Shown here: positions 4,401-54,420 of the stretch, one piece after another | Layout of the letters: every line of letters begins with the position of its first letter | Position numbering within the stretch: position 1 is the stretch's first letter | Made by a program: the position numbers and the translations under genes | Notes under the pieces: model-generated | Database searches by the model: none | The model's input: only the letters and a program-made list of their open reading frames with translations | What the model was told of the DNA's origin: nothing | Assembly (NCBI GenBank): GCA_037447605.1 | Contig: CM074816.1 | Coordinates: forward strand, 2,322,525 to 2,386,524 | From: Zygnema circumcarinatum SAG 698-1b | Taxonomy: Eukaryota; Plantae; Zygnematophyceae | Reading direction: 5' to 3' | DNA length: 64,000 nt

Positions 4401-5304
4401 GGGCGTTGAAGGTAGAGGGGTTGCGGGACATACGGGGGAGGGGTCCAAGCAAAGCAATGCACTTTTTTTTTTTTCGTAAAGTTGAAGTATCGTAGCATTG
4501 ACTTGTGCTCTGCTGTTCAGGGCTGTTTGGTGTTCCTGTTGAAAGATTCTGCCGCCATGGCGAAGTGGGGCGGCTTCGCAGCTCTGTTCATGCTCGCTGT
4601 GACGTGTGGTCGAGCTCAAGGTGGGTCGGATGCGCTGGAGTGCGAGGAAGGGAGAGAGGGATGGAGGGAGGGAGGGAGGGGGAGAGGGGAGAGAAGGGAG
4701 AGAGAGAGGGAGGGAGGGAGGGAGGGAGGGAGTGAGGGAGGGAGGGAGGGAGGGAGGGGGGGGAAGTGGGAAGTAGAGGAGGAGGGTTAGCGGACATGGA
4801 AGCTGGGAGTCTTGGCGTCGGTGGGAGTGGTGAAGAATGTGTGGGAGAGGTTGAAATTGGAAGAGTAACCCGCGTTCAACCTGTATCCTGCTGTTCAGCT
4901 CAGGAAATATATCTCTTCAATTTGAGTTGATCTCACATTGTCATTGCTGTCTTCGTTCCAAGAAGAAAAACTTGTGTGCTTTTTGTGGTTTCTCTGCTTG
5001 TAGTCTTGTTGCATTCTTGTTTCAGAACATCTAACTCCGCCTCTGCTAAGCTTAATGGAAGACATTGGTCCCAATTCAGGTCCATTTTGGAAGAATCACT
5101 TGCTCCTGTCGCTATGTTTGGCTTTGTAAGAAAATGTGTTGGGCTAGCAGATGCGTTTGACTATGTTCCCAATATTGAAATAGACGGGAATGACTTGGCA
5201 TCTGTCAGTGTTTCTTCTTCGGGGGAAGGCGCCCAGCTCTGCGTCCAGTCTTGCCAGTGTGTCTGTTTTTCTATAGAGTCATACAACTACTTTACTGATA
5301 CCGT
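1127..5304. other. Apparently exact 2084-bp direct duplication (1127-3210 = 3221-5304) flanking a 10-N gap; most likely an unmerged contig overlap
   Basis: The ORF track is identical at offset 2094. The copy starts at a 54-bp tandem repeat and breaks mid-exon at the gap. Confidence 0.8.
3674..3693. promoter_or_regulatory. Paired G-box/ABRE-like motif upstream of gene copy 1 (also at 1580-1599 in the duplicated segment)
   Basis: CCACGTGGCATGCCACGTGT, identical to 31648-31667 upstream of copy 2. Confidence 0.4.
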
Positions 5305-8300
5305 GTTCCAAAATTGGCTGAAACGTGCAACTGACATTCTCGTGGTTAGTGGCTCTTTTTACGACACATACGTTCTCACGAATGAGTCTCCAAAGTCAAC
5401 TCCTGAGTCGGTTTTTGATATCTATCAGATAGTGTCTGCCATGGTTTGAGGATTCTGAACGCTTTTGAACTCCAGCTCCACTAAATGGTTCTTTGAACTG
5501 ATTTCAGTGCTCACTAAATGCAGCTAAATCAAACTTTCTTCTGTACAATGCACATCGATGGACGAATACAACCGCAAACCTTTCTTGTCAGTACAAAAGT
5601 GGAAATTTCTCGGAATATTGCTTGACGATTCATTGCTTGATTACTTCCAAGCGCTATCCTTTGGAATCAGTCCTGAATGCGTCCGTCCCCCCACTCTCTA
5701 TCTGGTTTGGGTGTTGAGTGTTGTTTTCAGGGCTTGGTTCTTACCCTTGTGCCGGACTCTTGAACGAATATGACCCCTATGAAAAATTTGACTCAGAAGG
5801 GTTTGACTTAAGTGGAGAACTTGTAAGCTCCGTCGCCTATTGCAAAACCGCCTGCGACCGTGAGTGCAGGTGCCTCGCCTTCGCAGTCCAAGATCAAGGG
5901 GACGGGAGCTTTATTTGCGCAACAAAATACTATACTCGCCCTGTCTCAGAATGGGCGAGAAGACCGACCCGGGTACTGTTCAGGCGGCGAGATATGGGTA
6001 TGTGTCCTATGCCAGCTCAAGATATCAGTTCTAACACAGGTGCAGAAAATCTGTCCAGCATCGAAGGTTTTAGGTTTCGTTCAGCCAGACATGAAGTTTA
6101 ATAAAGGATAAGAAATAGATATCCAATACAGTCAGCAGCACGAGAAAGTTAGAAAGGAATGACTCTTGAAGCACACCACACTCTGACACACTTTTCTGTT
6201 TTGGTGCTTGATAGCTTGTTGTGAGAGCTTGACTAATTTACTGCAAGACTAAACCGAATTAGTTTCATACTTCAAGATTAATCTGCCCTTACACGTTGGA
6301 ATCAACGGGTATTGCAGGCAATTTGGCTCTCAACAGGCCCGCTTTTCAGTCCAGTACCTATGCAGATTGGCCATCTTTAGCACTGAATGCTGTGGATGGC
6401 TTCTCTGGCGATGGGAACTTCTTTACGGCTTCATGCACCCACACTCTTAGCGGTTCACCACAATGGTGGAAAGTGGACCTGTTGACCTCCACGGTGGTGG
6501 GCTCGGTGATGCTGTACGGCCGGACGGACTGCTGCCAAGACCGGATGAACGGAGTGACGGTGTGGGTGGGCGATGGCAACTCCACCTTCAATGGGGACGG
6601 GAATCAGGAGTGTGACCCCGGCAATGTCTTCGCATATTCAGACACAAGCAGCGGCTTTCCCTTTGTTAAGAAGTGCGCTTCTCTGCGCGGACAATTCGTT
6701 TGGGTGTACCCCAGTAATTTTAATCCTGTCACTTTATGTGAAGTGAAGGTCTTTGGAGGCTCTAGAGGTACGTCTTCCGCTCTTAATTTATACCCAAACC
6801 AATATCCAAACCATCCAAAATAATAACATGCATTACATATATTCTTCTGTCCGCACCTCCTTTTGCAGGAGAATGCGAGCTAACAGAACCATCGTTCCTT
6901 ATAAAAGTGATATTCTGTTTTGTATTTGTGCTGTAAAGATTGCCGGTTATATGGGCTACATGGTTAACTGATATGACGATTCTTTTTTCTTCTCTTTGTG
7001 CATGAATCCACATTGCAGAAAACTTGGCTCTGAACAAGCCTGCCTCGCAGGTAGACGATCCAATTCACGCTCCTGCACTGAGGGCTGTGGACGGCTCCGA
7101 TGGTGGTGGTGACTTTAATAGCGGTACATGCACCCGCACGAACAATAGCCCGTCCAGTTGGTGGAGAGTGGATCTGCTTGCGACCGTGAGGGTGGACTCA
7201 GTCGAGTTGTGGAACCGCTTAGACTGTTGTTCAGATCGCCTGAACGGAGTGATGGTGTGGATCGGCAGCAATGACGCCACATGGAACGCCGACGGAAATG
7301 AGGAGTGTGACCCCAGTAACGTCTTTCAATACTCAGACACAAGCAGCGGCTTTCCCTTTGTCAAGCAGTGCTTCCTGTTAGTTGGACGATTCGTTTGGGT
7401 GGTCATCAACAGCGGCCAGCCCCTCACATTATGCGAAGTGAAGGTTTTTGGATCGATTTTAGGAGCGTTGGAAGGTACATATGGCATCCTCATAATCACT
7501 TTTGAGAACCAAAATAGGTGAAGAAAAGCTAGTCCAACCATCAATGGATTAGCACTGGTAGATAGCAGAGCTGATTACACGAAGGTGAATAAAGAACAAG
7601 CCATAAGCTACAGTCAATAAAAAACTTTATGAAAAGACTCGCTCGTGCAGTATATCACACTCCGACACACTTTTTCTGTTTTGGTGCTTGATAGCTTGTT
7701 GTGAGAGCTTGACTTTTTTCCTGGAAGACAAACGAATTGGTTTCATACTTGAAGATTAATCTGCCTTTACACGTTGGAATCAACGGGTTTTGCAGGCAAT
7801 TTGGCTCTAAACAGGCCCGCTTTTCAGTCCAGTACCTATGCAGATTGGCCATCTTTAGCACTGAATGCTGTGGATGGCTTCTCTGGCGATGGGAACTTCT
7901 TTACGGCTTCATGCACCCACACTCTTAGCGGTTCACCACAATGGTGGAAAGTGGACCTGTTGACCTCCACGGTGGTGGGCTCGGTGATGCTGTACGGCCG
8001 GACGGACTGCTGCCAAGACCGGATGAACGGAGTGACGGTGTGGGTGGGCGATGGCAACTCCACCTTCAATGGGGACGGGAATCAGGAGTGTGACCCCGGC
8101 AATGTCTTCGCATATTCAGACACAAGCAGCGGCTTTCCCTTTGTTAAGAAGTGCGCTTCTCTGCGCGGACAATTCGTTTGGGTGTACCCCAGTAATTTTA
8201 ATCCTGTCACTTTATGTGAAGTGAAGGTTTTTAGGAGCTCTGAAGGTAGGCCTTGAACTCTCCCTAAGTAGTCCTCTCTTACTTCAACCCAATCTTGTTT

Positions 8301-11300
8301 GTAACAGTGATGGTAGAAACAATGCTTCACCGCCTCTCCCTGGCATAGGGAATGTTTGTCACAAGGGAAGTATAACGTGAACTTGAACTAGTGGCGGAGA
8401 GTGGTTTAACTGAAAATTCTGATATGAGTATGTGCGTCTGCTCCTTCACTGTGTTCGGCTGTGCAGGAACATGTGTAGGAGGTCCAGCAGAAACGTACGA
8501 ATATGTTCCAAATAAAGTTGCTAATTTGAATGACATTGGCAGCGCTTTAGTTTCTTCTGCGGGAGACTGCAAACAGCTTTGCACAAGCTTCTGCCAATGC
8601 GTCGGTTTTTCAATAACTCAAGGAATCGGTTATGGAGACGGAAGCCAGTTCCAATGCTGGCTGAAATATGCAATAGACTCTCCCACAGATAGTAGCTCTG
8701 TTCACACATACATACGCCGAAGTAAGTCACCATACCTTGGTTTGAGTCCTTGGCTTTGCTCGAGTAGTTAGTGGTTGAAATTGTTGAGTGCTCTGACCAC
8801 GACTGACTCTTTGCCTTCACCAGAAGAATCATAATTAATGTCCTTGATCTTATTTTACAGTACAAGAAAGTGGTAAGGCTCATATTTCGTACGTATGTCC
8901 AACTCAGGGTAATACACTATTCAAAGGAAGTTATTCTTGCGAGAGTTGTTGTCAATAGTCTAGCTGTGTGTATGCTTCAGAAATTGGCGAATTTTATGAT
9001 CTTTTTGTTTTCGTAAAACCTTGCAGCGTACTCTTTCCCTCCTCCAAGACCGCCATCAAGTCCACCTCCTCCTCCTCCTTCTCCTCCTCCTCCTCGAAAA
9101 CAGCCTCCACCTCGGTCTCGTCCGCCCCCTCCAAGGCCGCCTCCCTCTCCGCCTCCTCCGCGATCGCCGCCACCTCGACCTCCCCCAAGGCCGCCACCGC
9201 CGCCGCCGCCGCCACTTTCTCCGGAAGGTAATGGAAAGTTATAACTATTGTTGCGTTCCTCTGTTCTTTTAATCTCTATCTTTTGTTTGGTTGCACAGAC
9301 ATTCGTCATCGTTGAACTAGTACTACCTTTGAGGAAAATCATTCCTCCTATATGAGAAAGGTTTGCTGGCTGCGAGCTCGAAGCATCACGGGGATAGCAA
9401 CCATACAAAGTGCGGTGTTCAATAGTAAGAGGGAAGAGAGCACAGTCACTCATCGTTCTCGTAGAGATCTGGTGCTTGAGCCTGCTCTCCCGATGCCTAT
9501 TGAGCTTACTGTGTGGCTTCAAGCTAGTCTAAGAATTTCTCAATGGCTGTCTCTTCTGGCAATTGGTACAGTCGTTGCTCTTTTGGAGTTCAAGAGGGCG
9601 ATTGCAAACGACGTCCTTCGTAACTGGAAGCTGCAGAGCTCTGTATGCGACTGGGAAGGTGTAGGATGCACCACAACTTTGCCGAAAAGAGTCAACAAAC
9701 TGTGAGAAATCCTTCCTTGTCAACTCTTCATTCTTCAAATGTGATTTTTAGGGATGGAGGCAATGCTTATTTTGGTTATTTAAGAAATAGAAGTACAAAC
9801 GTGGATTGCCTGTCGCTAAACAAAACGAACTTTGATCCAAAAAAGGAAAATATTGACTCAGAATTATTCAAGTTTTGTCCTTTGCTGTAAAAATCGTGGT
9901 GACTTATCAGAGAAGGAAAATCCTACTTAGTTGAAGAGTCTCCTTGGTAATGAGTCTGTGTGGAGGTCATGAAGGGAACAAGAGAGAGACAAACAGAAAA
10001 GGCTCTGCGCTTTCAAGACCAAAAAAAAAAAAACAGGAATACACCTAAGATCTAACGCCTGACGAAGAGTATCAGCTATTATGTCTGAAGTGAAGAAACT
10101 CTTATTGAGAGAAACAGAACTTTCCAAGACAACCATCTGAAGCGCGCGTGTCGGTTTTGACAGCTTGTTGCCCGGAGGTAATCTGGTCAGTCCGCTGAAC
10201 GGCACGATCTCCCCCTCCATCGGCAGCCTTGCAGCTTTGGAAGAATTGTGAGCACCTCTTCCCCCTGTCGATCTTCGATAGCCAACTTTGGCATAGGGAA
10301 GCGAATAATTTCGTGCATGCCTGCAAAATGTGTACTGTGACCTAAACCTGTCGTATGAAAAGTACTCTACGAAGTTTTTTTTCCATATTTGTACCTTCTA
10401 GCTACGAAAATGCCACTACCTTATGCTCAGATGCACATTGTGTGCAATGTCGCAGGGATTTGTCGAACAACAAACTCAGCGGCGTCATTCCGGACACACT
10501 TGGCCAACTTCAGAATTTGAAAAAATTGTGTGTGATATTCACCTTTGGCCATTGTTTTGTAATGGAAAAAGTGTGATATGGTCTGCGACAAAGGACGAAT
10601 TGGACGTCTGCCTACCATTGAGCCTATTTTGTGTTCATTTCTCAAAATCCGCCGCTTTGATCCTGTGCTTGCTTTGCCAGGATTATTTTTTATGTGACTC
10701 ATTTGTTTACTACGGGTGCCTTTCGCTATGGCAGGACTTTGTCAAATAATGATTTGACGGGCGTTATTCCCTCTTCCTTCAGCAACCTCACCTCTCTGAC
10801 TGAGATGTAAGTGCCGAGTTGACTGCCCGACCAAGATGAGTGCCCACGTTTCTGCTATGTGTGTTAAGAAAAGCTTGCAACCTCCAACTGTTTGATCGAG
10901 TGGAATTTCAATCCTGCGGATAGGATATGAGTCAGTGCTTCAAAGGAGTATCAACCCTATCCACTGAAACGGATCGGATTGACATTGACTTGTGGCTGCT
11001 TTCGTGCAGATCATTGTCAATAAATCGGCTTACTGGGGGGATTCCCACTTCCTTCGAAAATCTAAAGTCTCTTTCTATACTGTGAGTGTCATTCTGGTCT
11101 TCACTAATTTACTCTGCTGTTTCAGAAAATACTGTTATTTTTGTCATCATGTAATAAAAAGACATAGTTCATCAGCTGTGCGGCAACTAACTGGATGCAG
11201 ATAGCTTAACACAAGTGATCGCAATTGACCAAACGACCAAGCATTCTCGTCGGTCAGTTCTATGACGGAATGAACAGAGAACTGGAGACTCTAATGAGAG

Positions 11301-14300
11301 AGGCTTGACGATGAGAGGCATGAGAGGTTTTGGATTCAATCATTTCTTACTCACGTAAGAGTTTTGTGTGCATGGTAGCTCAAAGTTTTCGAAAACTAGG
11401 AGTTGATTGATGAAGCATTTAGTCGAGGTTTCCTAAACATATGGGGCGCACCATGTCTTTGGAAGGCTCAGGTGACTGATTGTTCGTATTTTGACTCTTA
11501 AGTAGAACATGGTGGGTCCACAGAAACTTCGGAAGCAATCAGCTGAGCGGCCCAATCCCTGCTTCAATTGGCACACTGAGGGGCCTCAAAGAACTGTGAG
11601 TCGTTCTGCTTGAATCTGTGTCATTATCGCAATAATCTTATCCACGGCTAGAAAGGGATTCTGTGCATTTACACGAAAATGAGGAAACCTCGAATACTTG
11701 TCACCTTTCTTGTCTTGATGTCGGTGCACAAAGTTTCGCTGCAATTTGCAATGGCCAAATTTGTATCCTTATTTTTCTGTTGTGTCTTCTCCGCGGCTGA
11801 TGTGGCAGGCGCTTGTCAAATAATCTATTGACTGGAACCATTCCAACAACTTTTGGAGGGCTCTTATCCATTCGGAGCCTGTGAGTTAGCTAAACAATAA
11901 ATTCATTGATCTGAATGACAGTCGAGATAGATGAAGACTAGAAGCCCATGATGACGAGGTACAATGAAAATTTAGAATGTAGGATTGTTGCACTTGGCAT
12001 TTTCCTTTTCAGCATTAACTGGGGTCCTCTCACTGTCACAATACAATCACTAGAATTGAATACGGGCAACAAGACTTCAGGAAGTCTGTACACTATTGGG
12101 ATTTGAACAAACTGTTTATGTTAATTTTCCTGCAGGTCGTTAGCACAGAATCTTCTCATCGGCCCAATCGTGTTTGACTTCGGACTACTCGAAGACGTGT
12201 CCTTGAGCTTCGACAACAATTACTTTTCGGGTGAACTTTCGATTACTGTGAATGGCAAGACACAGAACTGCGCTGGAATTGACAACAACTGTTTTGCTGA
12301 TTTAGATGCGAACTGCACCGATCAAATACAAAGAGGTGACGATTCCTGCAACAACTTCTGCAATGCAAGACAGCCGCAGGGCGCGTGTGGTGGGAACGGG
12401 TACTGCTCTTATAATGGAAGCCAGCCGACCTGCACTTGCGATATTGGGTACAACATCGCCTCAGATACGAAGAGTTGTGTTTTTGGTGAGATCTCGACTA
12501 TGACGTCGATTTCGGTGTGGGCTATATTGAGATTCACATTCTTCTCGCTTGTAGCCCAGTAGAGGGTAAATGTTTGAGGATTTTCCAAAATGAGCATCTA
12601 AGATGTCCCTTTTGCAAAGAAGGTATGCGATGCAGCTTCATTCCACATTTCTAAGCAATCTGGGGAAGGCCGCGCGCACCCAAATGTAGGTAAATAAAAG
12701 GATAATTGATAGCTTTGCATCCATAAATCTATTCTGCTTGTGCATTTCGCGGTTGGGTTATCTTCTTATTTACTGTTGGAGGAACCCATAATACACAGCA
12801 GAAATCCTTTCTGAAATTGTTGCATTGCTCCTGTCGATCTTTAGGGGGACGAGGGTTCGGCTTAAACACGAGCCTCCCCATCACACCATATGCAAAACTG
12901 AACCGCTATTTTCGATATGCGACAACGGGATACTTGAGAAGGAGGAGCGGCAAGGCGTCGTGGCAGGTCGCCATCGCCTGGAATTGGACGGAGGAAGGAG
13001 CCGTCCAAGGCGTCAAGGATCAAGGAAGCTGCAGTGAGTGCTCAGCTCCTGCTCCCGCATTGGACAGACCTAACTCATTATGGCTGTATTGCCATTCTAC
13101 AAATATGAACCAGGAGGACATGTATCTCAAAATCATTCTACATTGCATGCACTTGGTCCTCAAAAACCTTGGCAGAACTTTTCTATAGAGATGTTTTACT
13201 TATCTTTAGTTAGGCAGAGACATCGGGTCAAACTGGTTTTCGCCGTTTGAGGCATTTTAGAGAAGGGTGCTGACTTAGGACATGGAGAACTCAAATGCAT
13301 GTCAGGATTCATGTGGCTGTTTTCTTGCAGGCTCTTGTTGGGTATTTTCTTCTATATCTGCCATTGAAAGCGCAATTTTCATCGTTAACGGTGGAAACCC
13401 TCCGCCCCCGCAGTTGGCAGAGCAGCAGCTCCTGAGCTGCTCCCCCGCCGGCAAGACCTGCGCGTCCGGGGGTTGGCCCCAGGAGGCGCTTGACTATGCC
13501 GCCAACAACGCCCTCACTTTAGCATCGAATTTCACGGGGCAAACGAGCTGTGGAAAGGTACAAAAAACGTCTGCTGAAATAAAAGCTGGCCAAGGAGATA
13601 GGAGAAAGAGTGACCTGCACAGCAGCAAGCTACCTTTGTAGCAATTTCTGCTCATCCTTCTTTGACAACCAGTCTGCGAAAAGGAAAAGAAGAGCACAAA
13701 CTGACGATGCTTGGATTCCTTGAGTTTTCTCTCTCCTTCATGGCAGGACATTGTGCACAATTAGGAAAAACGTCTTCATAAAGATTTATTTGACCTATTA
13801 TGGGTGTGTAACTTGCAGGGTGATAACAGGTTTAAAATTACATCGTTTGAGCAAGTGGCCTTCAACGGCTGGCTGGGCTTACTGCTCATTCTGCAGCAGC
13901 AACCGGCCATTGTGAATATTGAAGCGAGCAGTTCCAACTTCATCAACTACAACGGAGTAATGACAATATAAAGCTCTTCTGTCCCTGCTGGAAACTCATC
14001 GATTCTTTATTTCATTTTGATCCTCTGCATATAGGAAACGACCTTGCTTCTATTTTCCCAAGACGCTCACGTGATTGACTCTTTATTGTTGGCATCAGAG
14101 ACGTCACCTACTAACTTCTTTTCCGATATTCATCTGGCACCACTCATTTTTATAGCAAAATCCGTTGCGTTGCAGGGGGTGTTTGACGATGAAGACTGTT
14201 TTTCTAACGGAGTGGATCACAGCGTGATGGTGGTCGGATACGACTTGAGTGCGGATCCACCATTTTGGATCATCCGCAACTCGTGGGGGCGCAACTGGGG

Positions 14301-17300
14301 CGAGCAGGGCTACATGCGCCTCAAAATATCCTCCGGTTTGGGGACATGCGGGATCAACAGCCTTCCGGCACTCATGCCTGTAGTGAAGGCTGCAGGTGAG
14401 AGGGAGTTGTCGTTTTCATTCACGATCTTCAACTTTCATCACCGTGGCAGTTGACGTTGTAGCTTTCTAGCCTGGCTCCAACTAACTAGCTTGCTTTTAG
14501 CTTAGCGTGAACCACGCTAATGAGCTGATGGTACACTCAACATGCTTGCAATGCGTAAGGCTAAGACTGCCCTTGTGATTGTCCCATCAATTCTAATCAA
14601 CCATCAGATGAAATCACACAGCTAAACGGCCAGCTAGTCGAGAGGATGGCGATATTTCTCTAGCTCATTCGAATGAAAGCATGTACTCTATAAGTTTTTG
14701 GTGTTTCGCGACCATTACACCGCTCCCTTCCCAGATTCTGACAAGTAGTAATTATTGATCTTGATCGTACTCTCGTGTCTGGTGGATGCAGACAATGATC
14801 CATGCTTTATGAGAAACTATGCCAGTACAGTCCTTATGACCACAAATGGACCAGGTACAATGAACCCGTGCGGAAATGGTGTGTGTACTGTAAATGGTAC
14901 TACGAACCAATGTCTCTGCTCGGCGGGATTCGTGGCAGTGATCAACAGCGACAACTCGCAAACATGTGCACCACGTGGGTGGTCAATTCCATTAAGTAGA
15001 TGTTCATGTCCGTTCATGGTTGTTCAATGAACTAACCTTCGAATTTCTTTTTAATCAAATGGTATACCACTCCGTACATCTCTGACCAACGCGTATGCAT
15101 GTAACTAACAAGACCAATAACGTATAGTGTAAAAGCTTTTTCACCTCTGATTTCCATCCTATTTCCAATGCAAGCTCTAATCAAACGATCAGGAAAGCGC
15201 TTAATTGTTGCTACATGCGATTTGAAGTACTAGTAAACAACCGTATGAGTGTCTCCTGTGGAGCAGTCTCCCCCTGCACCTTCGCTGCAAGCAACCCCTG
15301 CGGCGTGGGGACGTGTCTCAATGCGGTGGCGACACCTGGCGCGTACGCCTGCGCCTGCCCGCTGGGATATGCCGCCGACTCGCCGGATGGCATCCTCACA
15401 TGCGTGCCAGGTCAGATCTGCGTTCTTTCTAAAACTGATAAAAATTCTTAAGCAAGGTCATTATTTCAATTTCAGATAAAGGGAGCGTTACAGCGATGTG
15501 ATCGAACGAAAATTCCTTCTTGACTTGAAGAACATGGAAATGACCCGAATTATGACGACACTACTACCTAAACAATCACACGAATGTACTATCACTTTTT
15601 GCCTCTCCTTTTTTCTAGGAAAGGAACTAATCGTTTCTGAGGCCATTCTAAACTGAAAGCTCTGATTGGTTTTGGTGTCGCCTTCAGCCGCAATAGCTAC
15701 AGGATTGCAGTCCTTTACTGTACCAGCCGGCGCCAACATGAGTTGCTACGACATATTTATCTTGTATGGCATCAAGAACGACGTTTTCTCATCCCAAAAT
15801 AAGGTCAGTGAGAGAGCGCACATCCTCTCACAACAACTTATCGTCTCACTTTCCTTGGATCTACATCTAGTAAAAGCCACGGGTCGGTGTTTCTAGCCTC
15901 TTTCTTCGTCTAATACGCTCGTATTGTGCTCATATTTGGTTCGATATTTCACAATCTCTTGTGCGTTTTTCAGATGCTGAACTGCCAATTGCCCTTGCCG
16001 GGAGGTACGGTGGTGAATGTCACCAATTACGGAAACTGCTCTGTGGTGTACGCTGTCAATGAGGTCAGCCTCCGTACTGTCTCCCGCACTTTTTCTCGTT
16101 AAGATCTCTTCTTGATTTTTTCCCTCCAACTTCAATGTTTCACTCATGATCGAAGGTGCAGCTGACAGTTACCTTCTCAAATTTTGCTTCCTTCAGGGTG
16201 ACACGTGTGAGGCAATTGCAGCATATTTCAACGTTACATCGATATATGGTCCAGGATCTCCCAATCCGGACTTAAGCTGCTCGCAGCTTCGACCTTTCCA
16301 GCAGGTACAGCCTCTGAACGTGGAAGGAGTTCAGCTCAATGTTTAACATGTTCAGTTCAGTGAATTCTACTTATAAGATAAGAGCCCTCATTTGCACAAA
16401 AGCGTGGAACATAGCTTAGCTTGTGTGCTCAAATAACTTCAAAATTTAACGTTATTTGCTTAATAGCACTGCTTCTTTGCACGCTGCATACCCAATGGCC
16501 AAAGATCCGTAATCTCGCATGCTACAATCCAAAAGTCACAAAAAAAGAACAGATTTATTTAAAGAATCTGATAAAATTCTGGGAGCAACGCGAAGTATAC
16601 GTACCTACTAAATCTTTTCGTCTTTAATCGTTCGTAGTCCGAGGAGCAGTGTTACATCATGAAACGACGTTAATACTTGCAAAGTATGAATGTCGAATAC
16701 TCTTGCAGGTCTGCATTCAGAGGGGAGCCCTTGTCTATCCGGGGCCATGCACGAAGACGTACGATGTGCAGCCCGAGGAGTCGTGCTTCTCCATCATAAA
16801 GAACAAACTCGATGGAGACATCAAAAAGTTCTACACGCTCAATCCTGGGGTGTACTGCGGCAAGCTGCTGCTCTCCACGAGCGGCAGCGCTTCAATTGGG
16901 CAGCATGTAAGAAATGGACAAAGAAAGCGCAGAAAATTATCGCAAGGTCATGCACGTGTCAAACTCGTTACAAATATAGTTTGAATTTCTTTTTGAGTTG
17001 GTTTTAAATCATTTGTTCGACTTGGTCGGAGTGAATGAAGATGTGGTTAGCTTATGTGGTTGAATTGGGTAAGTGGCGGTCTCGCCAATTGACGAAGTAA
17101 CTCATTTTTTTTTGTTCTAACGTCAGAACTATGTCCGGCCTGCATCCTGCAGGTGTGTCTGAAAGCTGCGAATCTTGGCGCCAGTGCGGACTGCAGTGGC
17201 AACACGTACACATTGAAGGCAGGAGATAAATGCGCCAATCGTAAAACGTGCTTCAACAAGAAGGAGAGTTTTAAAAAACTCAATGGCTTCCCATGCACAA

Positions 17301-17359: not shown

Positions 17360-17755
17360 ACACGATGCTGCATTAGGAACTCTCGTGTTTGGGTAGCACC
17401 TACGGAAAGATAACAAGAGGGTGCTTTATGACTGCTGGGGTATCAAACTCCTCATTTTTATGAAGGCATCGTGCTCGGCCGGTTCATGACTTTTTGGTTG
17501 AAGACGACTGAACTGCTTATTGCATTCGTAACGTGCACTCGCTGCCCGGGGATGCACCTCTCTGCCTTCTCCTGCCTCTGCGCCTCTTTTTGATCAACGA
17601 GAGGGTGTTTTGTGACTTCTGGGTAAACTTGGGGTTCTCAACCCGGCGTTCAAAAGTGCTCGTGTTCATGGAGGCATCTTGCTCGGCCAGTCCCGTGCCT
17701 TCTTGGTTGAAGGCGATTGAACTACGCCTTCTATTTGTAGTGTACAATAGGGGTA

Positions 17756-21400: not shown

Positions 21401-21967
21401 TAGAAGCTCCAGAATCAATTATCCAAGGCAGTTCGGGTTTCCCGGACCTGCATGGACCTTCTCGAATCCCACCCACGAACTCCTTGTTATGCGCTTCTGA
21501 GCTCATCATCAAGTTTGTCTCGCTTGCTCCATCTTGACAAGCCACAGACTTGTGGCCCTTCTTGCCGCACTTAAAACACGTTCCACCGAAAGTAGGCTTC
21601 TTCTTCTTGCTCGGATCTCCACCTGAAGACTCCCCTTTCTTCTCGGGTCGTCCCTTGGTCTGGTAGCAGTCCGTTGACAGATGTCCACGCTTGCCACACG
21701 TGTAGCATGTAGGGGGAGGACGATCTCCTCCATCTTTCTTCCCTTTGCTCTTGCCGAATTTCGCAGCCTGGAATGAGAGGACACTATCTGCAGTTCCTTT
21801 CCCACCCTCTAGCAACATTTCTGCCTCTCTGATTCTCCCTTTGATTTGCACCATAGACATGGGCAAGCTAGCAAGGTGAGTTCTTAATGACTCTACAACT
21901 CTTTCATATTTGCTTGGAAGTCCTATTAAGAAGTGATGAATCTCGCTAGGCAAGGTTATAGGCTGCT

Positions 21968-38600: not shown

Positions 38601-41600
38601 AAGTCAATTTTTCCCAAAAAGCTGGAAGATAGGCAGAGAGCGAGTCCATGGGAGTGTGCAAGTGCACGGAGGAGAGAATACAAGCCCTGAATCCATACCT
38701 CACATGGCGGAATGCAGGCTATCAGAGTGTAGGATACGACACACGCAACGGAGTGAATGCCGTGAATCTGTTAGCATCAAGAAACGTGTCGAATCTTCTA
38801 TTCCAATCAAATGTCAACATTCCTGGAAAGTGGTGCTTCAAATTGTCAGGTAAGGCTGCCATGCAGTTTCTCTTGTAATGCTTATCTTCTTCCAAGCAAA
38901 AAATGTATGGTAACAGCAAAATTTCACCTGAAACATTAAAGTGCCGTGGTGACCTTCGCTGCTTTTGTACAAATTGTTATCTTTGTTGCAACAAAAGTGA
39001 GATCGCGAGATGACTGCCTTTGCTTGGTTTTAGCTCAGTCTAGCTGTGTGAAGCCAATAAAGTGCATAGTGATGCAACGTATGGCGACAAACATCAAATG
39101 GCATGATGGCATGTGACTGCAGGATTGTCATTATTTTTTAGAGTCCTCGCACAGTAGTTGAGGATCTACATTACAATGGCAAGAACAGATCCATAATAAA
39201 ATGACTTTATCTTGTTGTGAAGGTGTCCTATTTAAGAAATAGCTTCTGCTAAATTGTATAGATCACCTTAACCAATTTGATCAAACAAGCAACAAAAAGA
39301 AAAAGGAAATGATTTCATAACGCGAAAATATTAAAATTTGGCAGTTTGAATTTTTCAGCTTGTCAATACAGTTACATTTTTTCATTTTTCTCCACTGCAG
39401 TTCCCACACCGAGTCCGCCGCCGATTCGACCGCCTCCGCCATCACCTCCATCTCCGCCCCCTCCAAAGCCGCCTCCATTTCCGCCTCCTCCGAGGCCGCC
39501 TCCACCTCCGCCTTCTCTAAGGCCGCCTCCATCTCCACCTCCTCCGAGGCCGCCTCCATTTCCGCCCCCTCCGAGGCCGCCTCCACCTCCGCCTTCTCTA
39601 AGGCCGCCTCCATCTCCGCCTCCTCCGAAGCCGCCTCCATCTCCGCCTCCTCCGAGGCCGCCTCCATCTCCGCCTGCTCTACGGCCGCCTCCATCTCCGC
39701 CTCCTCCACGATCACCGCCACCTCGACCTCCCCCAAGGCCGCCACCCCCGCCACTTTCTCCGGACGGTAATGGAAAGTTATAAAGATTGTCGCTTTCCTT
39801 TGTTTTTTATCTCTATCTTGTTTTTGGTTGCACAAACATTAGTCATCGTCAAAAAAATACTACCTTTGGAGAAAATCAGTTCTCCCCACGTGTCTTTTGA
39901 TCATTATGTGAGAAAGGTTTGCTGGCTGAGCGCTAGAAGCATCACGAGGACAGCAAATCAACCATACAAAATGCACTGTTCAATACTAAGATGGAAGAGA
40001 GTACAGTCACTCATCGGTCTCGTTCAGATCTGCTGCTTGAGCCTGCTCTCCCGATGCTTATTGAGCTTACTGCGTGGCTTCAAGCTAGTTTAAGACTTTC
40101 TCTATGGCTGTCTTCTGCCAATCGGTACAGTCGTTGCTCTTTTGGAGTTCAAGAGGGCGATCGCAAACGACGTCCTTAGTAACTGGAAGCTAGAGAGCCC
40201 TGTATGCAACTGGGACGGTGTAGGATGCACCACAACTTTGCCAAAAAGAGTCAACAAACTGTAAGAGATCCTTCCTTGTCACCTCTTTATTCTTCTAACG
40301 TGATTTTTAAGTATGAAGAAAATGTTTATTTTGGTTATTTAAGAAATAGGAGTACAAACTTGGATTGCCTTCGACTAAAAGAAACGAACTGAAAAAATAG
40401 GAGAATGATAGACCCTCCCCCCTTTTGGATATCCCCTCCCCTTTTCAGGAAATTTCAAACTTCCATTTTGGCTATCCACTCCCCCTGTTTTGGGTTTTTT
40501 GGGAGAAGATATCCCCTCCCCTCCCCTCCCTTGCCCTCCCCTCCCCTGCCCTCCTCTTCGCTCCTCTTCACGGTTTCCAATGTCCACAGAAATGCTACCA
40601 ACTGTGTATGAGACTCGCTGCGATGAGCTCGTACAAGTCATGACCGAGCAACAAAAGCATGAAGGATTTCACATCAAGATCGGCATCAGAAATTGAAAAT
40701 CCAACTTAGTTGAAGAGTCTCCTTGGTAATGAGTCTGTGTGGAGGTCATGAAGAGAACAAGAGAGAGACAAACAGAAAAGGCTCTGCTCTTTAAGACAGA
40801 AAAAAAAAAGGGAATACTACTGAGAACTAATGCCTGAGGAAGAGTGTCACCTATTATGTTTGAAGTGATGAAACTCTCGTTGAGAGAAACAGAACTTCCT
40901 AAGACAGGCATCTGAAGTGCGTGTCTCGCTTTTGACAGCTTGTTGCCAGGAGGTAATCTGGTCAGTCCGCTGAACGGCACGATCTCACCCTCTATCGGCA
41001 GCCTTGCAGCTTTGGAAGAATTGTGAGCACCTCTTCCCCTTATCGATCTTCGATAGCCAACTTTGGCAAAGGCAAGCGAATAATTTTGTGCATGTCTGCA
41101 AAATCTGTACTTGAAACCTCCGTATACTTGGGTGCATGCTGCCCACTCCTAACTATCTTTGTTGTGGACGTACCATCGAGCAAGCCACACGAACTTTCTC
41201 ATGTCCACAAGAAAGGCATGAAAGGCATGGGTCACGAGTTCTGTGCGGAAACTGGTTTGACATGTGAATATACCAGCAAATTATGTGTAGGGTTTGATCA
41301 TTTCTCTTGGGTTTTGTAAGACTTTTAAAGGAATTTTGTTTCCAAGAAGATAAAGTTGAACGTGCATGCCTGCATTCGCTGTCGCACCTGCCGTTCTTGC
41401 TCGTTCCTGCCAACGATGTGGACAGATGTGCCTTTTTTTGATTGAGCCTAAGACTCACACATGTTTGAGTCAACATTGACATGTTAGTCGTACCCAGGAT
41501 TATGGCTTCATGGAGTGCATGAAAAATGAGCTACAAAGAATTTCGTCACTTAATCTGTGCTGGGTAACTTGGATGTCTCCAAAGGCACAATCAAATTTCG

Positions 41601-44600
41601 AATCTGTGACCTAAATCTGTCATATGAAAAGTACTCTACGGAGTTTGTTTTCCATATTTGTACCCTCTAGCTACGCAAATGCCACTACCTTATGCTCAGA
41701 TTCAATGTCGCAGGGATTTGTCGAACAACGAACTCAGCGGCGTCATTCCGGACACACTTGGCCAACTTCAGAATCTGAAAAAATTGTGTGTGATATTCAC
41801 CTTTGTTTTCTGTTTTGAAATGGAAAAAGTGTGATATAGTCTGCGACAAAGGACGATCATGGACGTCTTCCCTGCCATTGAGCCTATTTCGTTTTCATTT
41901 CTCAAAATCGGTCACTTTTATCCTGTGCTTGCTTCGACAGAATTATTTTTATTCGATTAATTTGTTTACTATGGGTGACCTTCGCTATGGCAGGACTTTG
42001 TCCTATAATAAGTTGACAGGCGTTATTCCCTCTTCATTCAACAACCTCACCTCTCTGACGGAGTTGTAAGTGCCGAGTTGACTGCCCGACCAAGATGAGT
42101 GCCCACGTTTCTGCTGTGTGTTAAGAAAAGCTTGCAACCTTCAACTGTTTAATCGAGTGGCATTTCAATCCTGCGGATATGATATTAGTCAGTGCTTCAA
42201 CGAAGGAGAATCAACCATATCCACTGAAACGGATCGGATTGACGTTGACTTGTGGCTGCTTTCTTGCAGATCATTGTCAGTAAATCGGCTTACTGGGAAG
42301 ATGCCCGCTTCCTTCGAAAATCTAACGTCTCTTTCGATACTGTGAGTGTCATTCTGGTCTTCACTAATTTACTTGGCTGTTTCAAAAAATACTGTTTTTT
42401 TTCGTCATGTAATAAAAAGTCATAGTTCAGCAGCTGTACAGCAACTTACTGGATGCAGATATCTTATCACAAGTGATAGCAATTGAAAACGACCAAGCAT
42501 TCTCACTGCAGTTCTATGACGGAATGAACAGAGAACTGGAGACTCTAATGAGAGAGGCTTGAGGATGAGAGGCATGAGAGGTTTTGGATTCAATCATTTT
42601 TTACTCACGTAAGAGTTCTGTGTGCATGGTAGTTCAAAGTTTTTGAAAACTAGGAGTTGATTGATGAAGCATTTAATCAAGGTTTCCTAAACACATGGGG
42701 CGCACCACTTTGGAAGACTCAGGTGACTGATTGTTCGTATTTTGACTCTCAAATAGAACATGGTGGGTCCACAGAAACTTCGGAAGCAATCAGCTGAGCG
42801 GTTCAATCCCTGCTTCAATTGGCACACTGAGGGGCCTCAAAGAACTGTGAGTCATTCTGCTTGAATCTCTGTCATTATCGCAATAATCTTATCCACGGCT
42901 AGAAAGGGATTCTGTGGCATTTACACGACAATGAGAATATCTCGTTGTTAATCTCTTGTCTTGATGTCGGTGCACAAATTTTCGCTGCAATTTGCAATGG
43001 CCAAATTTGTATCCTTATTTTTCTGTTGTGTCTTCTCCGCGGCTGATGTGGCAGGCGCTTGTCAAATAATCGATTGACTGGAACGATTCCAACAACTTTT
43101 GGAGGGCTCTTATCCATTCGGAGCCTGTGAGTTAGCTGAACAATAAATTCATTGATCTGAATGACAGTCGAGATAGATGAAGACTAGTAGCCCATTATGA
43201 CGACTTACAATAAAAATGTAGAAAGTAGGACTGTCACACTTGGCATTTTCCTTTTTAGCATTAACTGGGGTCCTCTCACCGTCACAGAAAAATCACTAGA
43301 ATTGAAGACGGACAATCGGACTTCAGGAAGCTGGTACACGATTGAGATTTGTTAATTTTCCTGCAGGTCTTTAGCAAAGAATCTTCTCATCGGCCCAATC
43401 GTGTTTGACTTCGGACTACTCGAAGACGTGTCCTTGAGCTTCGACGACAATTACTTTTCGGGTGAACTTTCGATTACTGTGAATGGTGCGCCACAGAACT
43501 GCGCTGGAATTAACTACAACTGTTTTGCTGATTTAGATGCGAACTGCGATGCGCAAAAACGCGATGACGATTCCTGCAACAACTTCTGCAATGCAAGACA
43601 GCCGCAGGGCGCGTGTGGTGGGAACGGGTACTGCTCTTATAATGGAAGCCAGCCGACCTGCACTTGCGATACTGGGTACAACATCACCTCAGATACGAAC
43701 ACTTGTGTTTTTGGTGAGATCTCGACTATGATTTCGATTTCGGTGTGGGCTATATTAAGATTCACATTCTTCTCGCTTGTAGCCCAGTAGAGGGTAAATG
43801 TTTGAGGATTTTCCAAAATGAGCATCTAAGATGTCCCTTTTGCAAAGAAGGTATGCGATGCAGCTTCATTCCTCATTTCTAAGCAATCTGGGGAAGGCCG
43901 CGCGCACCCAAATGTAGGTAAATAAAAGGATAATTGATAGCTTTGCATCCATAAAACTATTCTGCTTGTGCATTTCGCGGTTGGGTTATCTTCTTATTAA
44001 CTGATGGAGGAACCCATGTTATTCAGCAGAAATCCTTTCTGAAATTTTGCATTGCTCCTGTCGATCTTTAGGGGGACGAGGGTTCGGCTTAAACACGAGC
44101 CTCCCCATCACACCATATGCAAAACTGAACCGATATTTTCGATATGCGACAACGGGATACTTGAGAAGGAGGAGTGGCAAGGCGTCGTGGCAGGTGGCCA
44201 TCGCCTGGAATTGGACGGAGGAAGGAGCCGTCCAAGGCGTCAAGGATCAAGGAAGCTGCAGTGAGTGCTCAGCTTCTGCTTCAGCATTTGAAGGACCTAA
44301 CTCATTATGGCTGTATTGCCATTCTACAAATATGAACCAGGCGGACATGTATCTCAAAATCACTCTACATTGCATGCACTTGGTCCTCAACAACCTCGGC
44401 ACAACTTTTCTATAGAGATGTTTTTACTTATCTTTAGTTAGGCAGAGACATCGGGTCAAACTGGTTTTCGCCGTTTGAGGCATTTTAGAGAAGGATGATG
44501 ACTTAGGACATGGAGAACTCAAATGCATGTCAGGATTCATGTCGCTGCTTTCTTGCAGGCTCTTGTTGGATATTTTCTTCTATATCTGCCATTGAAAGCG

Positions 44601-47600
44601 CAATTTTCATCGTCAACGGTGGAAACCTTCCGCCCCCGCAGTTGGCAGAGCAGCAGCTCCTGAGCTGCTCCTCCACCGGCAAGACCTGCGCGTCCGGGGG
44701 ATGGCCCCAGGAGGCGCTTGACTATGCCGCCAACAATGCCCTCACTTTAGCAACGAATTTCACGGGGCAAACGAGCTGTGGAAAGGTACAAAAACCTCTG
44801 CTGAAATAAGAGCTGGCCAAGGAGATAGACAAAAGAGTGACCTGCACAGCAGCAAAGCAATTGTTTTCCTTGGTAGCAATTTCAGCTCATCCTTTTTTGT
44901 ATACCAGTCTGCGTGAAGGAAAAGAAGAGCACAAACTGAAGATGCTTGGATTCCTTCAGTTTTCTCTCTCCTTCATGGCAGGACTTTGTGCATAATTAGG
45001 AAAAACTTCTTCATAAAGATTTATTTGACCTATAATGGGTGTGTAACTTGCAGGGTGATAACAGGTTTAAAATTACATCGTTTGAGCAAGTGGCCTTCAA
45101 CGGCTGGCTGGGCTTACTGCTCATTCTGCAGCAGCAACCGGCCATTGTGAATATTGAAGCGAGCAGTTCCAACTTCATCAACTACAACGGAGTAATGACA
45201 ATATAGTTCACTTCATGGCCCTGCTGGAAACTCATCGATTCTTTATTTCATTTTGATCCTCTGCCATTTAGGAAACGACCTTGCTTCTATTTTCCCAAGA
45301 CGCTCACGTGATTGACTCTTAATTGTTGGCATCAGTGACATCACCTACTAACTACTTTTCCGATATTCATCTGGCAGCACTCATTCCTACAGCAAAATTC
45401 CTTGCGTTGCAGGGGGTGTTTGACGATGAAGACTGCTTTTCCAACGGAGTGGATCACAGCGTGGTGGTGGTCGGATACGACTTGAGTGCGGATCCACCAT
45501 TTTGGATCATCCGCAACTCGTGGGGCCAAAACTGGGGCGAGCAGGGCTACATGCGCCTCAAAATATCCGCCGGTTTGGGGACATGCGGGATCAACAGCCT
45601 TCCGGCACTTATGCCTGTAGTAAAGTCTGCAGGTGAGATGGATTTGTCGTTTTCATTCACGATCTTCAACTTTCATCACCGTGGCATTTGACGTTGTAGC
45701 TGTTTAGCCTAGCTCGAACTGGCTAGCTCGCTTAGCTTAGCTAAGCGTGAACTATGCGAAAGAGCTGATGGTACACGCAACATGCTTGCAATGCGCAAGG
45801 CTAAGACTGTCCTTGTGATTGTCCCATCAATTCTAATCAACCTCCGGATGAAATCACACAGCTAAACGGCCAGTTAGTCGAGAGGATGGTGATATTTCTC
45901 TAGCTCATTAAAATGAAACCATGTTCGCTTTTCTTTTTCTGAGTTTCGCGACCATTGCACCGCTCCATTCTCAGCTTCTAGCAAGGAATAAATATTGATC
46001 TTGTTCGTACTCTCGTGTCTGGTGAATGCAGACGATGATCCATGCTTTACGAGAAACTATGCCAGTACAGTGCTTATGACCACAAATGGACCAGGTACAA
46101 TGAACCCGTGCGGAAATGGTGTGTGTACTGTGAATGGTACTACGAACCAATGTCGCTGTTCGGCAGGATTCGTGGCAGTGACTAACAGCGACAACTCGCA
46201 AACATGTGCACCACGTGGGTGATCAATTCCATGAAATAGATGTTCATGTCCGTTCATGTTTGTTCAATGAATTAACCTTCGAAAGTCTTTTTCATCAAAT
46301 GGTATACAACTCCGTGCATCTCTGACCAACGCGTATGCATGTAACTACCCAGACCAATGACGGATAGTATAATTGCTTTTCACGTTTGAGTTCCATTTGA
46401 CTTCAATGCAAATTTTTATCAAACGATCAGGAAAGCGCTTAATTGTTGCTACTTGTGATTCAAATTACTAGTAAATAACCGTATGAGTGTCTCCTGTGGA
46501 GCAGTCTCCCCCTGCACTTTTGCTGCAAGCAACCCCTGCGGCGTGGGGACGTGTCTCAATGCGGTGGCGACACCTGGCGCGTACGCCTGCGCGTGCCCGC
46601 TGGGATATGCTGCCGACTCGCCGGATGGCATCCTCACATGCGTGCCAGGTCAGATCTCCGTTCTTTCTAAAACTGATGAAAATTCTTAAGCAAGGTCATG
46701 TTTCAATTTCACATTAAGAGAGCGTTATAGCGATGTGATCGAACGAAAATTTCTTCTTGATTTGAAGAACATGGAAGATGACCCGAATTATGACGACACT
46801 ACTACCTAAACAATATCACGACTGTGCTATCACTTTTAACTTCTTCTTTTTTCTAGGAAAAGGAAGTAATCGTTTCTGAGGCCATTCTAACTCAAAGCTC
46901 TGATTGGTTTGGGTGTCGCCTTCAGCCGCAATAGCTACAAGATTGCAGTCCTTTACCGTGCCAGCCGGCGCCAACATGAGTTGCTACGACATATTTATCT
47001 TGTATGGCATCAAGGCCGACGTTTTCTCAGCCCAAAATAAGGTCAGTGAGAGAGCGCACATCCTCTCACAACAACTTATCGTCTCACTTTCCTTGGATCT
47101 ACATCTAGGAAAGGCTACGGGTTGGTGTTTCTAGCCTCTTTCTTCGTCTTTTACGCTCTCATTGTGCTCATATTTGGTTCGATGTTTCACAATCTCTTGT
47201 GCGTTTTTCAGAGGCTGAACTGCCTATTGCCCTTGCCGGGAGGTACGGTGGTGAATGTCACCAATTACGGAAACTGCTCTGTGGTGTACGCTGTCAATGA
47301 GGTCAGCCTCCGTACTGCTTCCCCAACTTTTTCTCGTTAAGATCTCCTCTTGATTTTTTCCCTCCAACTTTAATGTTTCACTCATGATCGAAGGTGCGCT
47401 GACAGTTACCTTCTCAAATTTTCCTTCCTTCAGGGTGACACGTGTGACGCAATTGCAGCATATTTCAACGTTACATCTATATATGGTCCAGGATCTCCCA
47501 ATCCGGACTTAAGCTGCTCGCAGCTTCGACCTTTCCAGCAGGTACAGCCTCTGAACGTGGAAGGAGTTAAGCTCAATGTTTAACATGTTCAGTTCAGTGA

Positions 47601-48594
47601 ATTCTACTGATTAGATAAGAGCCCTCCTTTGCACAAAATCGTGAAGGATAGCATAGCTGTGTGCCCAAATAATTTCAAATTTTAACGTCCATTTGCTTAA
47701 TAGCACTGCTTCTTTGCACGCTGCATACCCAATTGCCAAAGATCCGTAATCTCGCATGCTTCAATCCAACGCTCACAACAAAAAAACAAATTTACGTAAA
47801 GAATCTGATCAATTCTAGGAGTAACGCGAAGTATCCGTACCCACTAAACCTTTTCATCTTTAATCATTCGTAGTCCGAGGCGCAGTGTTACATCATGAAA
47901 CGACGTTAATAGTAGCGAAGTATGAGTGTCGAATACTCGTGCAGGTCTGCATTCAGAGGGGAGCCCTTGTCTATCCGGGGCCATGCACGAAGCCGTACGA
48001 TGTGCAGCCCGAGGAGTCGTGCTTCTCCATCATAAGGAACGAACTCGCTGGAGACATCAAAAAGTTCTACACGCTCAATCCCGGGGTGTACTGCGGCAAG
48101 CTGCTGCTCTCCACGAGCAGCAGCGCTTCGATTGGGCAGCATGTAAGAAAGGGTCAAAGAAAGCGCAATAAAATATTAGAGGGTTATGCACGTGTCAATT
48201 TTGTTACAAATATAGTTTGAATTTCTTTTCGAGTTGGTTTTAAATCATTTATTTGACTTCGTCGGAGTGAATGAAGATATGGTTAGCTTATGTGGTCGAA
48301 TTGGGCATGTGGCGGTCTCGCCAATTGCAGAATTAACTCATTTTTTTTGTCTTAACGTCAGAACTATGTCCGGCCTGCATCCTGCAGGTGTGTCTGGAAG
48401 CTGCGAATCTTGGCGCCAGTGCGACCTGCAGTGGCAAGACGTACACGTTGAAGACAGGAGATAAATGCGCCAGTCTTAAGAAATGCTTCAACAAGAAGGA
48501 GAGTTTTAAAAAACTCAATGGTTTCGCATGCACTGCGACAGCCATGAAAAAAATGAAGACGATTTGTGTTCCTACGACAAGCGCATGCGCTTAA
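32602..48594 (+). CDS. Secreted multidomain cysteine protease, copy 2: SP - 2x NIDO - Pro-rich - LRRNT/LRRs - EGF - C1A - 2x EGF - 4x LysM (about 1506 aa)
   Basis: GT-AG exons: 32602-32867, 33166-33212, 33705-33879, 34437-34552, 35704-35835, 36151-36358, 36654-36700, 37175-37349, 37955-38070, 38718-38849, 39401-39766, 40131-40260, 40939-41022, 41714-41785, 41994-42065, 42270-42341, 42775-42846, 43055-43126, 43367-43713, 44072-44260, 44559-44785, 45054-45191, 45413-45632, 46032-46214, 46505-46648, 46926-47041, 47212-47301, 47434-47541, 47945-48142, 48388-48594. Total 4521 nt, in frame; catalytic residues intact. Confidence 0.82.
32690..38849 (+). CDS. Two tandem NIDO (nidogen-like) domains, 5 exons each
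   Basis: MVPYGPASGD...AFFNSTY...VSNNGYLTF; YIAPFNYD; DTRASG.V.YR; NTFQAWLA...FLYPEGGLQY; SNVNIPGKWCF. The introns are also duplicated. Confidence 0.8.
39401..39766 (+). CDS. Extensin-like Pro-rich stalk exon (122 codons) with an internal 81-nt tandem duplication
   Basis: SPPPP/RPPP repeats. Its 3' part is homologous to 9130-9227. Confidence 0.75.

Positions 48595-52329: not shown

Positions 52330-54420
<2,091 letters not shown>

Follow-up and report, generated by a model that had tools for sequence, protein, structure and literature searches.

What do two large neighbouring genes with a common second half and unrelated first halves encode, and what would their products do outside the cell? 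This question is raised by a 64,000-nucleotide (nt) stretch of DNA from Zygnema circumcarinatum SAG 698-1b (assembly GCA_037447605.1, contig CM074816.1, positions 2,322,525 to 2,386,524), which is the whole stretch that was analysed and is called the window below, all positions being counted from its first letter. Gene 1 lies at 4557-17359 and gene 2 at 32602-48594, both on the forward strand. Each joins a variable N-terminal part, the head, to a shared remainder, the chassis, with leucine-rich repeats (LRRs), a C1A papain-like protease, EGF-like modules and LysM modules. Our answer, to which we give a probability of roughly 0.6, is that gene 1 and gene 2 are expressed paralogues belonging to a zygnematophyte family of large, predicted secreted, modular proteases that would be targeted to glycans.

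Gene models were built from stop-free pieces with a splice-aware dynamic-programming script, together with joints seen in RNA and family alignments. Gene 1 has 27 exons and codes for 1636 amino acids (ATG at 4557, stop codon at 17357-17359), and gene 2 has 30 exons and codes for 1506 amino acids (ATG at 32602, stop codon at 48592-48594), the latter with both of its NIDO units modelled consistently and with an alternative donor that lengthens the first exon. Each spliced model contains a single stop, at its end, and both proteins open with a signal-peptide-like leader, while a window scan of the spliced models found no hydrophobic 19-residue window of the membrane-span type past the signal peptides in either protein. 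An earlier note, made from the letters of this DNA, had described two intact open reading frames (ORFs) with signal peptides and no transmembrane segment, and the independent spliced models uphold this description. Its 30 exons for gene 2 are reproduced as well; its 26 for gene 1 give way to 27 in our own model, the difference lying in the 5' PAN region. The head-chassis junctions it had placed at 8721-9027-9572 and 38849-39401-40131 agree with the independent models, and 8721|9027 is present in RNA. After the head, both proteins follow the same order, that is an SPPPP stalk, LRRNT, about eight plant-type LRRs, one EGF module, the C1A protease, two further EGF modules and four LysM modules. 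The heads differ: that of gene 1 holds three F-type lectins besides PAN modules, that of gene 2 two putative NIDO domains. Pfam was run on single exons and on database relatives, next to local hidden Markov models (HMMs).

Four sequencing runs of the same organism act as transcriptomes for this locus: of the words sampled from 9000-17600 they contain a share of about 0.1-0.2, their depth lies on exons only, and they show GT..AG joints. Spliced Logan contigs carry the gene 1 joints 8245|8467, 8721|9027, 10806|11010, 11081|11524, 11595|11809, 11880|12136, 12485|12845 and 13033|13331, and the joint that leads from the last head exon to the stalk, 8721|9027, reaches a depth of 130 in run X2 and of 80 in run X4. 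Loose ends of contigs, compared letter by letter with the genome, add donor 5997 joined to an F-type lectin exon start, the passages between the first and second (with one single-nucleotide polymorphism) and between the second and third F-type lectin exons, 9701|10164, 10247|10456, 10527|10735 and 13557|13819. The earlier note had allowed for a locus without expression; gene 1 RNA is instead spliced at high depth. For gene 2, word shares of 0.13-0.35 are found in transcriptome-sized runs, which also hold words from its head-to-LRRNT region (36100-40300).

The chassis of gene 1 begins with the LRR block and the first EGF-like module (9572-12485), in which RNA joints or loose ends are found at every LRR exon boundary. 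This part opens with the LRRNT exon (9572-9701, LRRNT_2 at E 2e-9), continues with six short LRR exons seen in RNA joints or loose ends, of which one measures 84 nt (10164-10247) and the other five 72 nt, and closes with an exon (12136-12485) that encodes the remaining LRRs together with EGF-like 1. In both genes the repeats read LxxLxLxxNxLSGxIP and mostly lie on 72-nt exons, and they are of the plant-specific 24-residue type as judged from the relative P0182, which matches the ectodomains of the plant LRR receptor-like kinases GSO1, FLS2 and PEPR1. From the LRRs to the stop no kinase-like sequence is found in either gene, nor any membrane-span-like window. Hence, with neither membrane span nor kinase, the two proteins are not receptor-like kinases or receptor-like proteins.

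The C1A papain-like protease of gene 1 is spread over four exons (12845-13033, 13331-13557, 13819-13956 and 14176-14395), the first of which is tied to EGF-like 1 and to the second by the RNA joints given above, and Peptidase_C1 matches exon pieces at E 2.7e-12 and 1.3e-18, above the gathering score. The catalytic set of Gln, Cys, His and Asn is intact in both genes, within QGSCSSCW(V/I)F, VDHSV(M/V)VVGYD and IIRNSWG, and from these residues the protease would apparently be active in both copies. The best PDB matches of a relative's protease are ananain, actinidin, ficin and cathepsin S/L. The I29 inhibitory prodomain that cathepsin-L-like enzymes of plants and animals typically carry is not found in the spliced models, only about 45 residues separating EGF1 from the mature protease N-terminus. 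Likewise, Pfam places no Inhibitor_I29 in the relatives P0006, P0010, P0051, P0054, P0125 and P0151, and does place it in the ordinary papain matches P0002-P0004.

Two EGF-like modules (14792-14974 and 15267-15410, EGF at E 1e-5), colinear with those of family members, follow the protease and lead into the tail of gene 1, in which five exons (15688-17359) carry four LysM modules of the Cys type, as recognised by a family-tail HMM and by family alignment. This HMM, of 235 positions and built without the window's own rows, matches the spliced tail of gene 1 over positions 4-234 at E 7e-53 and that of gene 2 over positions 4-233 at E 5.5e-54. Compared with solved structures, the family profile finds the LysM of a fern chitinase-A (5bum, E 1e-12) and Ecp6 (4b8v, E 6e-10), as well as a Volvox chitinase LysM and bacterial LysMs. 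In the alignment the four modules follow the pattern YTV..GD(T)C...NP.L.C...GQ.(I/V)C.

The chassis of gene 2 (40131-48594, LRRNT_2 at E 6e-10) is made of 19 exons that correspond one-to-one to exons of gene 1, with splice sites kept. At 46939-46940 gene 2 has AA where one gene 1 model uses an acceptor AG (15703). An in-frame acceptor 15 nt upstream of the AA site (46926 in gene 2, equivalent to 15688 in gene 1) is kept in both genes, and to judge from the two sequences it is probably the one used.

The head of gene 1 starts with an exon that holds the start codon and the signal peptide (MAKWGGFAALFMLAVTCGRAQ; 4557-4620), its donor at 4620 being the best-scoring in the region. PAN/apple-like exons follow at 5094-5997, with weak PAN_2/PAN_4 matches. 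Enumeration of in-frame models gives either one hybrid PAN (..5256|5870..) or two PANs (..5324/5348|5731..); the hybrid splice scores better than two full PANs, yet both PAN halves stay open. Next come three F-type lectin exons, FTP1 (6318-6767), FTP2 (7019-7474) and FTP3 (7796-8245), with a match to Pfam F5_F8_type_C_2. In the PDB an F-type lectin exon matches FBP32 (3cqo) at E 3.3e-37, eel agglutinin (1k12) at E 4.2e-17 and 2j1r at E 1e-11, and Streptococcus fucolectins are included among the matches. The fucose-binding motif of F-type lectins, taken from the eel agglutinin literature, is His ... Arg-x-Asp-x4-Arg/Lys. It appears in FTP1 and FTP3 as CTHT ... RTDCCQDR, and FTP2 reads CTRT ... 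RLDCCSDR, with Arg in place of the motif His, so that one of the three predicted fucose sites is altered. Between FTP1 and FTP3 there are 7 differences in 450 nt, of which six fall in the last 17 bases; taken with the intron sequence that precedes each exon, the repeat block extends over 626 nt at 95% identity. This suggests a very recent duplication or a gene conversion within the head. The last head exon (8467-8721) is again a PAN (PAN_4, E 3e-6, above the gathering score), with RNA joints on both sides, and is followed by the extensin-like stalk exon (9027-9227). The RNA joint at 8721|9027 sets this stalk in the proline frame and hence gives SPPPP repeats.

To the left of gene 1, the 2084 nt before the gap 3211-3220 (1127-3210) are 100% identical to the 2084 nt after it (3221-5304), so that exon 1 of gene 1 occurs a second time (2463-2526), together with a portion of the first PAN exon. 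The repeat looks like an assembly artefact, with contig ends left unmerged, and not like a true duplication.

The head of gene 2 (32602-38849) is modelled in frame as 10 exons, which encode a signal peptide and a tandem pair of putative NIDO units, with five exons per unit and 87% identity in DNA. Parts of the NIDO profile (PF06119) fall in order on three consecutive exons, positions 26-91 at E 0.005, 98-127 at E 3e-5 and 143-184 at E 1e-3. Matched in this way exon by exon, each part alone lies below the 25-bit gathering score and together they sum to about 61 bits. The SPPPP stalk exon of gene 2 (39401-39766) has 366 nt, of which only the 3' half is homologous to gene 1. A homologous-protein search with the last head exon of gene 2 gave no candidate for bridging transcript fragments.

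Self-comparison of the window matches 9038-17556 with 39592-48791 at 82-92% identity, with nothing in common upstream. In direct alignment the homology starts inside the Pro-rich stalk exon, at about 9038 in gene 1, and neither the 5' part of this exon nor the preceding intron aligns. From LRRNT to the stop the two chassis are 92% identical in amino acids, with one in-frame indel of 3 nt, and the rates of synonymous (dS) and nonsynonymous (dN) substitution are 0.085 and 0.038, a dN/dS of 0.45. By region, dN/dS is 0.31 in C1A, 0.14 in EGF2-3, 0.48 in the LRRs and 0.66 in the LysM modules. Mismatches reach 4.7% in exons and 8.8% in introns, where about 800 gap columns are counted as well. These values point to purifying selection on the shared chassis, and both copies look functional. 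An origin of gene 1 and gene 2 as alleles or haplotigs is ruled out by the unrelated heads, the 4.7% exon difference and the many intron indels.

Phase 1 on entry and on exit is found in the stalk exons of both genes, in the three F-type lectin exons and the last PAN exon of gene 1, and in the second of the two NIDO units of gene 2. Seen together with a homology boundary inside a repetitive Pro-rich exon, these phase 1-1 exons are consistent with an exchange of heads through exon shuffling and recombination in the stalk repeats; this is a pattern and not a demonstrated event. The constant chassis with a variable head, as proposed in the earlier note, is thus borne out by the start of homology within the stalk, by the phase 1-1 exons and by relatives with other heads (legume lectin, CBM14).

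A search of a representative protein library with the papain exon gave no match above about 50% identity and hence no near-identical protein, but relatives surfaced, whose identity to the window proteins is 35-55%. Eight Closterium strains have many proteins of 1050-1260 amino acids with the order LRR-C1-EGF-LysM, and their annotations all read hypothetical or unnamed. The Closterium relatives are CLOP_g11111, g5629 and g11113 of sp. NIES-67, CAI5502628.1 of sp. Naga37s-1, which looks like two tandem copies fused, and others in NIES-64/65/54/53/68 and Yama58-4; further zygnematophyte relatives are ME000166S01720 and ME000065S09004 of Mesotaenium and SM000281S10751 of Spirogloea. These hypothetical proteins share with ours LRRNT, LRRs, EGF, a C1A protease without I29, EGF and three to four LysM modules, colinear to the C-terminus, but they are about 35-48% identical and mostly headless. 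One Closterium protein combines LRRs and C1 with a legume lectin, and another C1 with CBM14. Neither a PAN/F-type-lectin head nor a double-NIDO head was seen among the Closterium, Mesotaenium and Spirogloea relatives examined.

The closest relatives of the window protease, at about 40-55% identity, are transcript ORFs of EukProt. These Trinity transcripts belong to one transcriptome, that of another species, and their ORFs are complete. P0006, P0151 and P0180 encode a legume lectin, a Pro-rich linker, C1A, two EGF modules and LysM; P0182 and P0183 encode LRRs, C1A and LysM, and P0182 is 41% identical and colinear. Hence a head, a Pro-rich linker and protease-LysM occur in one ORF, as do LRR, C1A and LysM, although the lectin-headed forms have no LRR block and their heads differ from those of gene 1 and gene 2.

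C1A domains are known to co-occur with LysM domains outside vascular plants (PMC6362431). Supplementary Table 3 of that work lists one mosaic of LysM x2, SRCR x2, EGF x2, fucolectin, peptidase C1A and galactose-binding x4, and another of peptidase C1A and LysM x3, and in its main text the pairing of LysM with fucolectin is ascribed to Chlamydomonas (Van Holle and Van Damme 2019, PMC6362431). The Chlamydomonas reinhardtii mosaics resemble the window proteins in that C1A is accompanied by two to three LysM modules, EGF-like, fucolectin, galactose-binding-like and other lectin domains; they differ in having SRCR, WSC and C-type lectin instead of LRRs and are known as an architecture catalogue only (PMC6362431). 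In the literature on Closterium, Zygnematophyceae and Chlamydomonas no characterised LRR-C1A-LysM protein was found. The earlier note, which knew of no characterised protein of this architecture, overstated the case: the chassis is annotated in Closterium, Mesotaenium and Spirogloea, and C1A-plus-LysM mosaics are catalogued (PMC6362431). A functional study of the LRR form was not found in that literature. What is new here is the occurrence of PAN/F-type-lectin and double-NIDO heads in the LRR-containing form of a catalogued, uncharacterised green-algal family of lectin-targeted papain proteases.

Each predicted secreted window protein holds a C1A protease, an extensin-like module and repeated LysM modules together. 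A possible precedent is a cysteine protease of Volvox carteri, a chlorophyte, which Amon et al. are said to have described in 1998 as a secreted protein with an extensin-like module and three chitin-binding repeats of the LysM type. It is reportedly induced by sex pheromone and by wounding, and reportedly has no LRR, no EGF and no lectin, PAN or NIDO head. In land plants, papain-like proteases (RD21, Rcr3/Pip1) and LysM or LRR receptors offer the same protease subfamily, the same LRR type and LysM modules, but on separate proteins, the proteases with I29 and the receptors spanning the membrane or anchored in it and in most cases equipped with a kinase; in the window proteins everything is fused in one soluble, predicted secreted chain. 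Animal pattern-recognition zymogens, such as horseshoe crab Factor C and the modular serine proteases of insects, have recognition modules (EGF, lectin-like) fused to a protease. Here the likeness is one of logic, proteolysis being localised or triggered once a microbial polymer is bound; the animal enzymes differ in being serine proteases with a defined zymogen activation and an unrelated sequence.

From these domains and likenesses a recognise-and-cleave role, whether in defence or in mating and wall remodelling, is plausible, if on purely inferential grounds. The protein would be exported to the cell wall or mucilage, where the LysM tail might dock on polymers of N-acetylglucosamine (GlcNAc), be it peptidoglycan of bacteria or the chitin in parasitic chytrids or fungi. 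The head would give a second specificity, for fucosylated glycans in the case of the F-type lectins, and the hydroxyproline-rich rod could be a glycosylated spacer or a wall anchor. The LRR block may bind a protein or peptide partner, and the protease would then cleave proteins at the bound surface. Recombination within the repetitive Pro-rich exon could exchange phase 1-1 head exons and so give rise to new specificities.

Of the possible targets, organisms walled with chitin or peptidoglycan seem to us more likely than the alga's own gametes or wall. The main alternative keeps the same gene structure and assigns the proteins an endogenous job, that is remodelling of the own wall, or gamete recognition or release in conjugation, and not attack on microbes. 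Sex pheromone, and not wounding alone, reportedly induces the Volvox protease; NIDO, PAN and EGF are adhesion or matrix modules, the SPPPP rod resembles the glycoproteins of algal walls and agglutinins, and the heads diverge fast, as mating proteins do. Yet among solved LysMs those closest to the window's bind chitin and belong to chitinases and a fungal effector, and GlcNAc polymers, the ligands of LysM, are not known among the components of zygnematophyte walls. On balance we consider an endogenous job unlikely and retain defence as the preferred role of these putative glycan-targeted proteases.

Several observations weigh against the proposal as a whole. A C1A protease without prodomain poses a problem of folding and latency. 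On window pieces the Pfam LysM model (PF01476) barely responds to the window's own modules, with one weak match at E 0.019, and the LysM call rests on the family profile; relatives score Pfam LysM up to E 9e-28. The dN/dS of 0.66 in the LysM modules is relaxed, and the RNA evidence for gene 2 consists of exon-level word shares, without junctions. Finally, RNA over the head-chassis junctions, the check that the earlier note had proposed, bears out 8721|9027 and leaves the second step of gene 1 without its joint: 9227|9572, from stalk to LRRNT, is absent from the joints listed among the RNA contigs, which break in the low-complexity stalk, and a 410-nt contig runs unspliced through 9223-9599 at a depth of 11.

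These last points would also be accounted for if head and chassis were separate genes, that is if a lectin-extensin protein ended after the stalk and an LRR-protease-LysM protein were made from an internal promoter and an ATG within the intron. The unspliced frame past the stalk reads ..LSPEGNGKL and then a stop; gene 1 has at 9492-9571 an ATG in frame, followed by a hydrophobic stretch (MPIELTVWLQASLRISQWLSLLAIGTV), that reads directly into the LRRNT exon; and most family members in databases are headless. However, the depth of 11 on the unspliced contig compares with 130-143 on the stalk exon and is similar to the retained-intron signal of the next intron, and one RNA contig starts exactly at the LRRNT acceptor (9573), as expected where two upstream contexts meet the same exon. 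Furthermore, the stalk-LRRNT donor and acceptor are kept in both genes with matching phases, while the intron between them has indels of 2, 5 and 19 nt. In the gene 2 equivalent (40050-40130) the ATG is no longer in frame, owing to a 2-nt deletion, and no Met occurs in the stop-free stretch that runs into the LRRNT exon, so that this chassis needs upstream exons and cannot start alone, yet it is conserved and words from the head-to-LRRNT region occur in the runs. Moreover, in the transcript ORFs of another species described above a Pro-rich linker connects the protease to a lectin head. Two separate genes are thus improbable in our judgement, and head and chassis very probably form a single gene, in which we infer the stalk-to-LRRNT splice of gene 1. 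The stretch with the ATG at 9492-9571 may descend from the first exon of a headless ancestor, or may serve as a minor internal start.

That the protease domain is mainly a binding or decoy module of a secreted sensor, or that one or both copies are decaying duplicates, would suit the missing prodomain, the LysM dN/dS, the AG lost in gene 2 at 46939-46940 and a recent duplication with retroelements flanking the copies, but is very improbable given catalytic residues and oxyanion Gln kept in both copies, a C1A dN/dS of 0.31, reading frames intact over 27 and 30 exons, the in-frame alternative acceptor at 46926 and the high-depth splicing of gene 1 RNA.

Taken as expressed genes for secreted modular proteases, gene 1 and gene 2 are of interest for several reasons. 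No algae are more closely related to land plants than the zygnematophytes, and LRR and LysM ectodomains and a papain-like protease, which are separate immune components in land plants, here lie on one predicted secreted polypeptide. Animal-like matrix modules (NIDO, F-type lectin, EGF, PAN) are also present in this gene pair and would have been assembled by symmetric-phase exon shuffling. If microbial glycans are bound and proteins cleaved locally, this would be an extracellular defence by direct attack next to the origin of plant immunity, and a clear case of building new recognition specificities by head exchange. The absent prodomain raises the question of how a C1A protease of this kind folds and is kept latent. 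The family lends itself to experiment, being expressed and present in several copies, and Closterium is amenable to genetics. A more far-reaching idea, that LRR and LysM ectodomains fused to a papain protease form a secreted, directly acting recognise-and-cleave immune arsenal whose phase 1-1 head exons are shuffled by recombination in the extensin-coding exon, an effector-type forerunner of or an alternative to receptor-kinase immunity, is one we regard as doubtful.

Runs of N in the window begin at 3211, 19061, 26606, 29191, 29967, 32144, 49672 and 52031, and a scan of both gene spans found no N base inside gene 1 or gene 2, whose exons and introns thus cross no assembly gap. Five flagged gaps (19061, 26606, 29191, 29967 and 32144) all lie within the 15 kb that separate the two genes, so that their tandem adjacency depends on the scaffolding over these gaps. 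The gap 32144-32153 is only 449 nt upstream of the gene 2 ATG, and the sequence beyond it depends on scaffolding in the same way. Two Ty1/copia coding regions are found between the genes, one on the reverse strand (19026-21953; Pfam zf-CCHC, gag_pre-integrs, rve and RVT_2) that is cut by the gap at 19061, and one on the forward strand (25425-29131; Pfam Retrotran_gag_2 and RVT_2) that is broken by the gap at 26606.

Past gene 2, at 49326-49470 and 49883-50000, lie two further copies of a stretch of about 120-146 nt from the 3' flank of gene 1 (17850-17995), about 91% identical, one in direct and the other in inverted orientation. Further downstream, 53483-54390 and 62413-62851 consist of long (CA/GT)n-type and related dinucleotide microsatellites, which give rise to spurious ORFs rich in His-Thr or Cys-Val, and the reverse strand at 61274-62170 holds an ORF with an ATG, of 298 amino acids, with a long Ser/Pro-rich middle.

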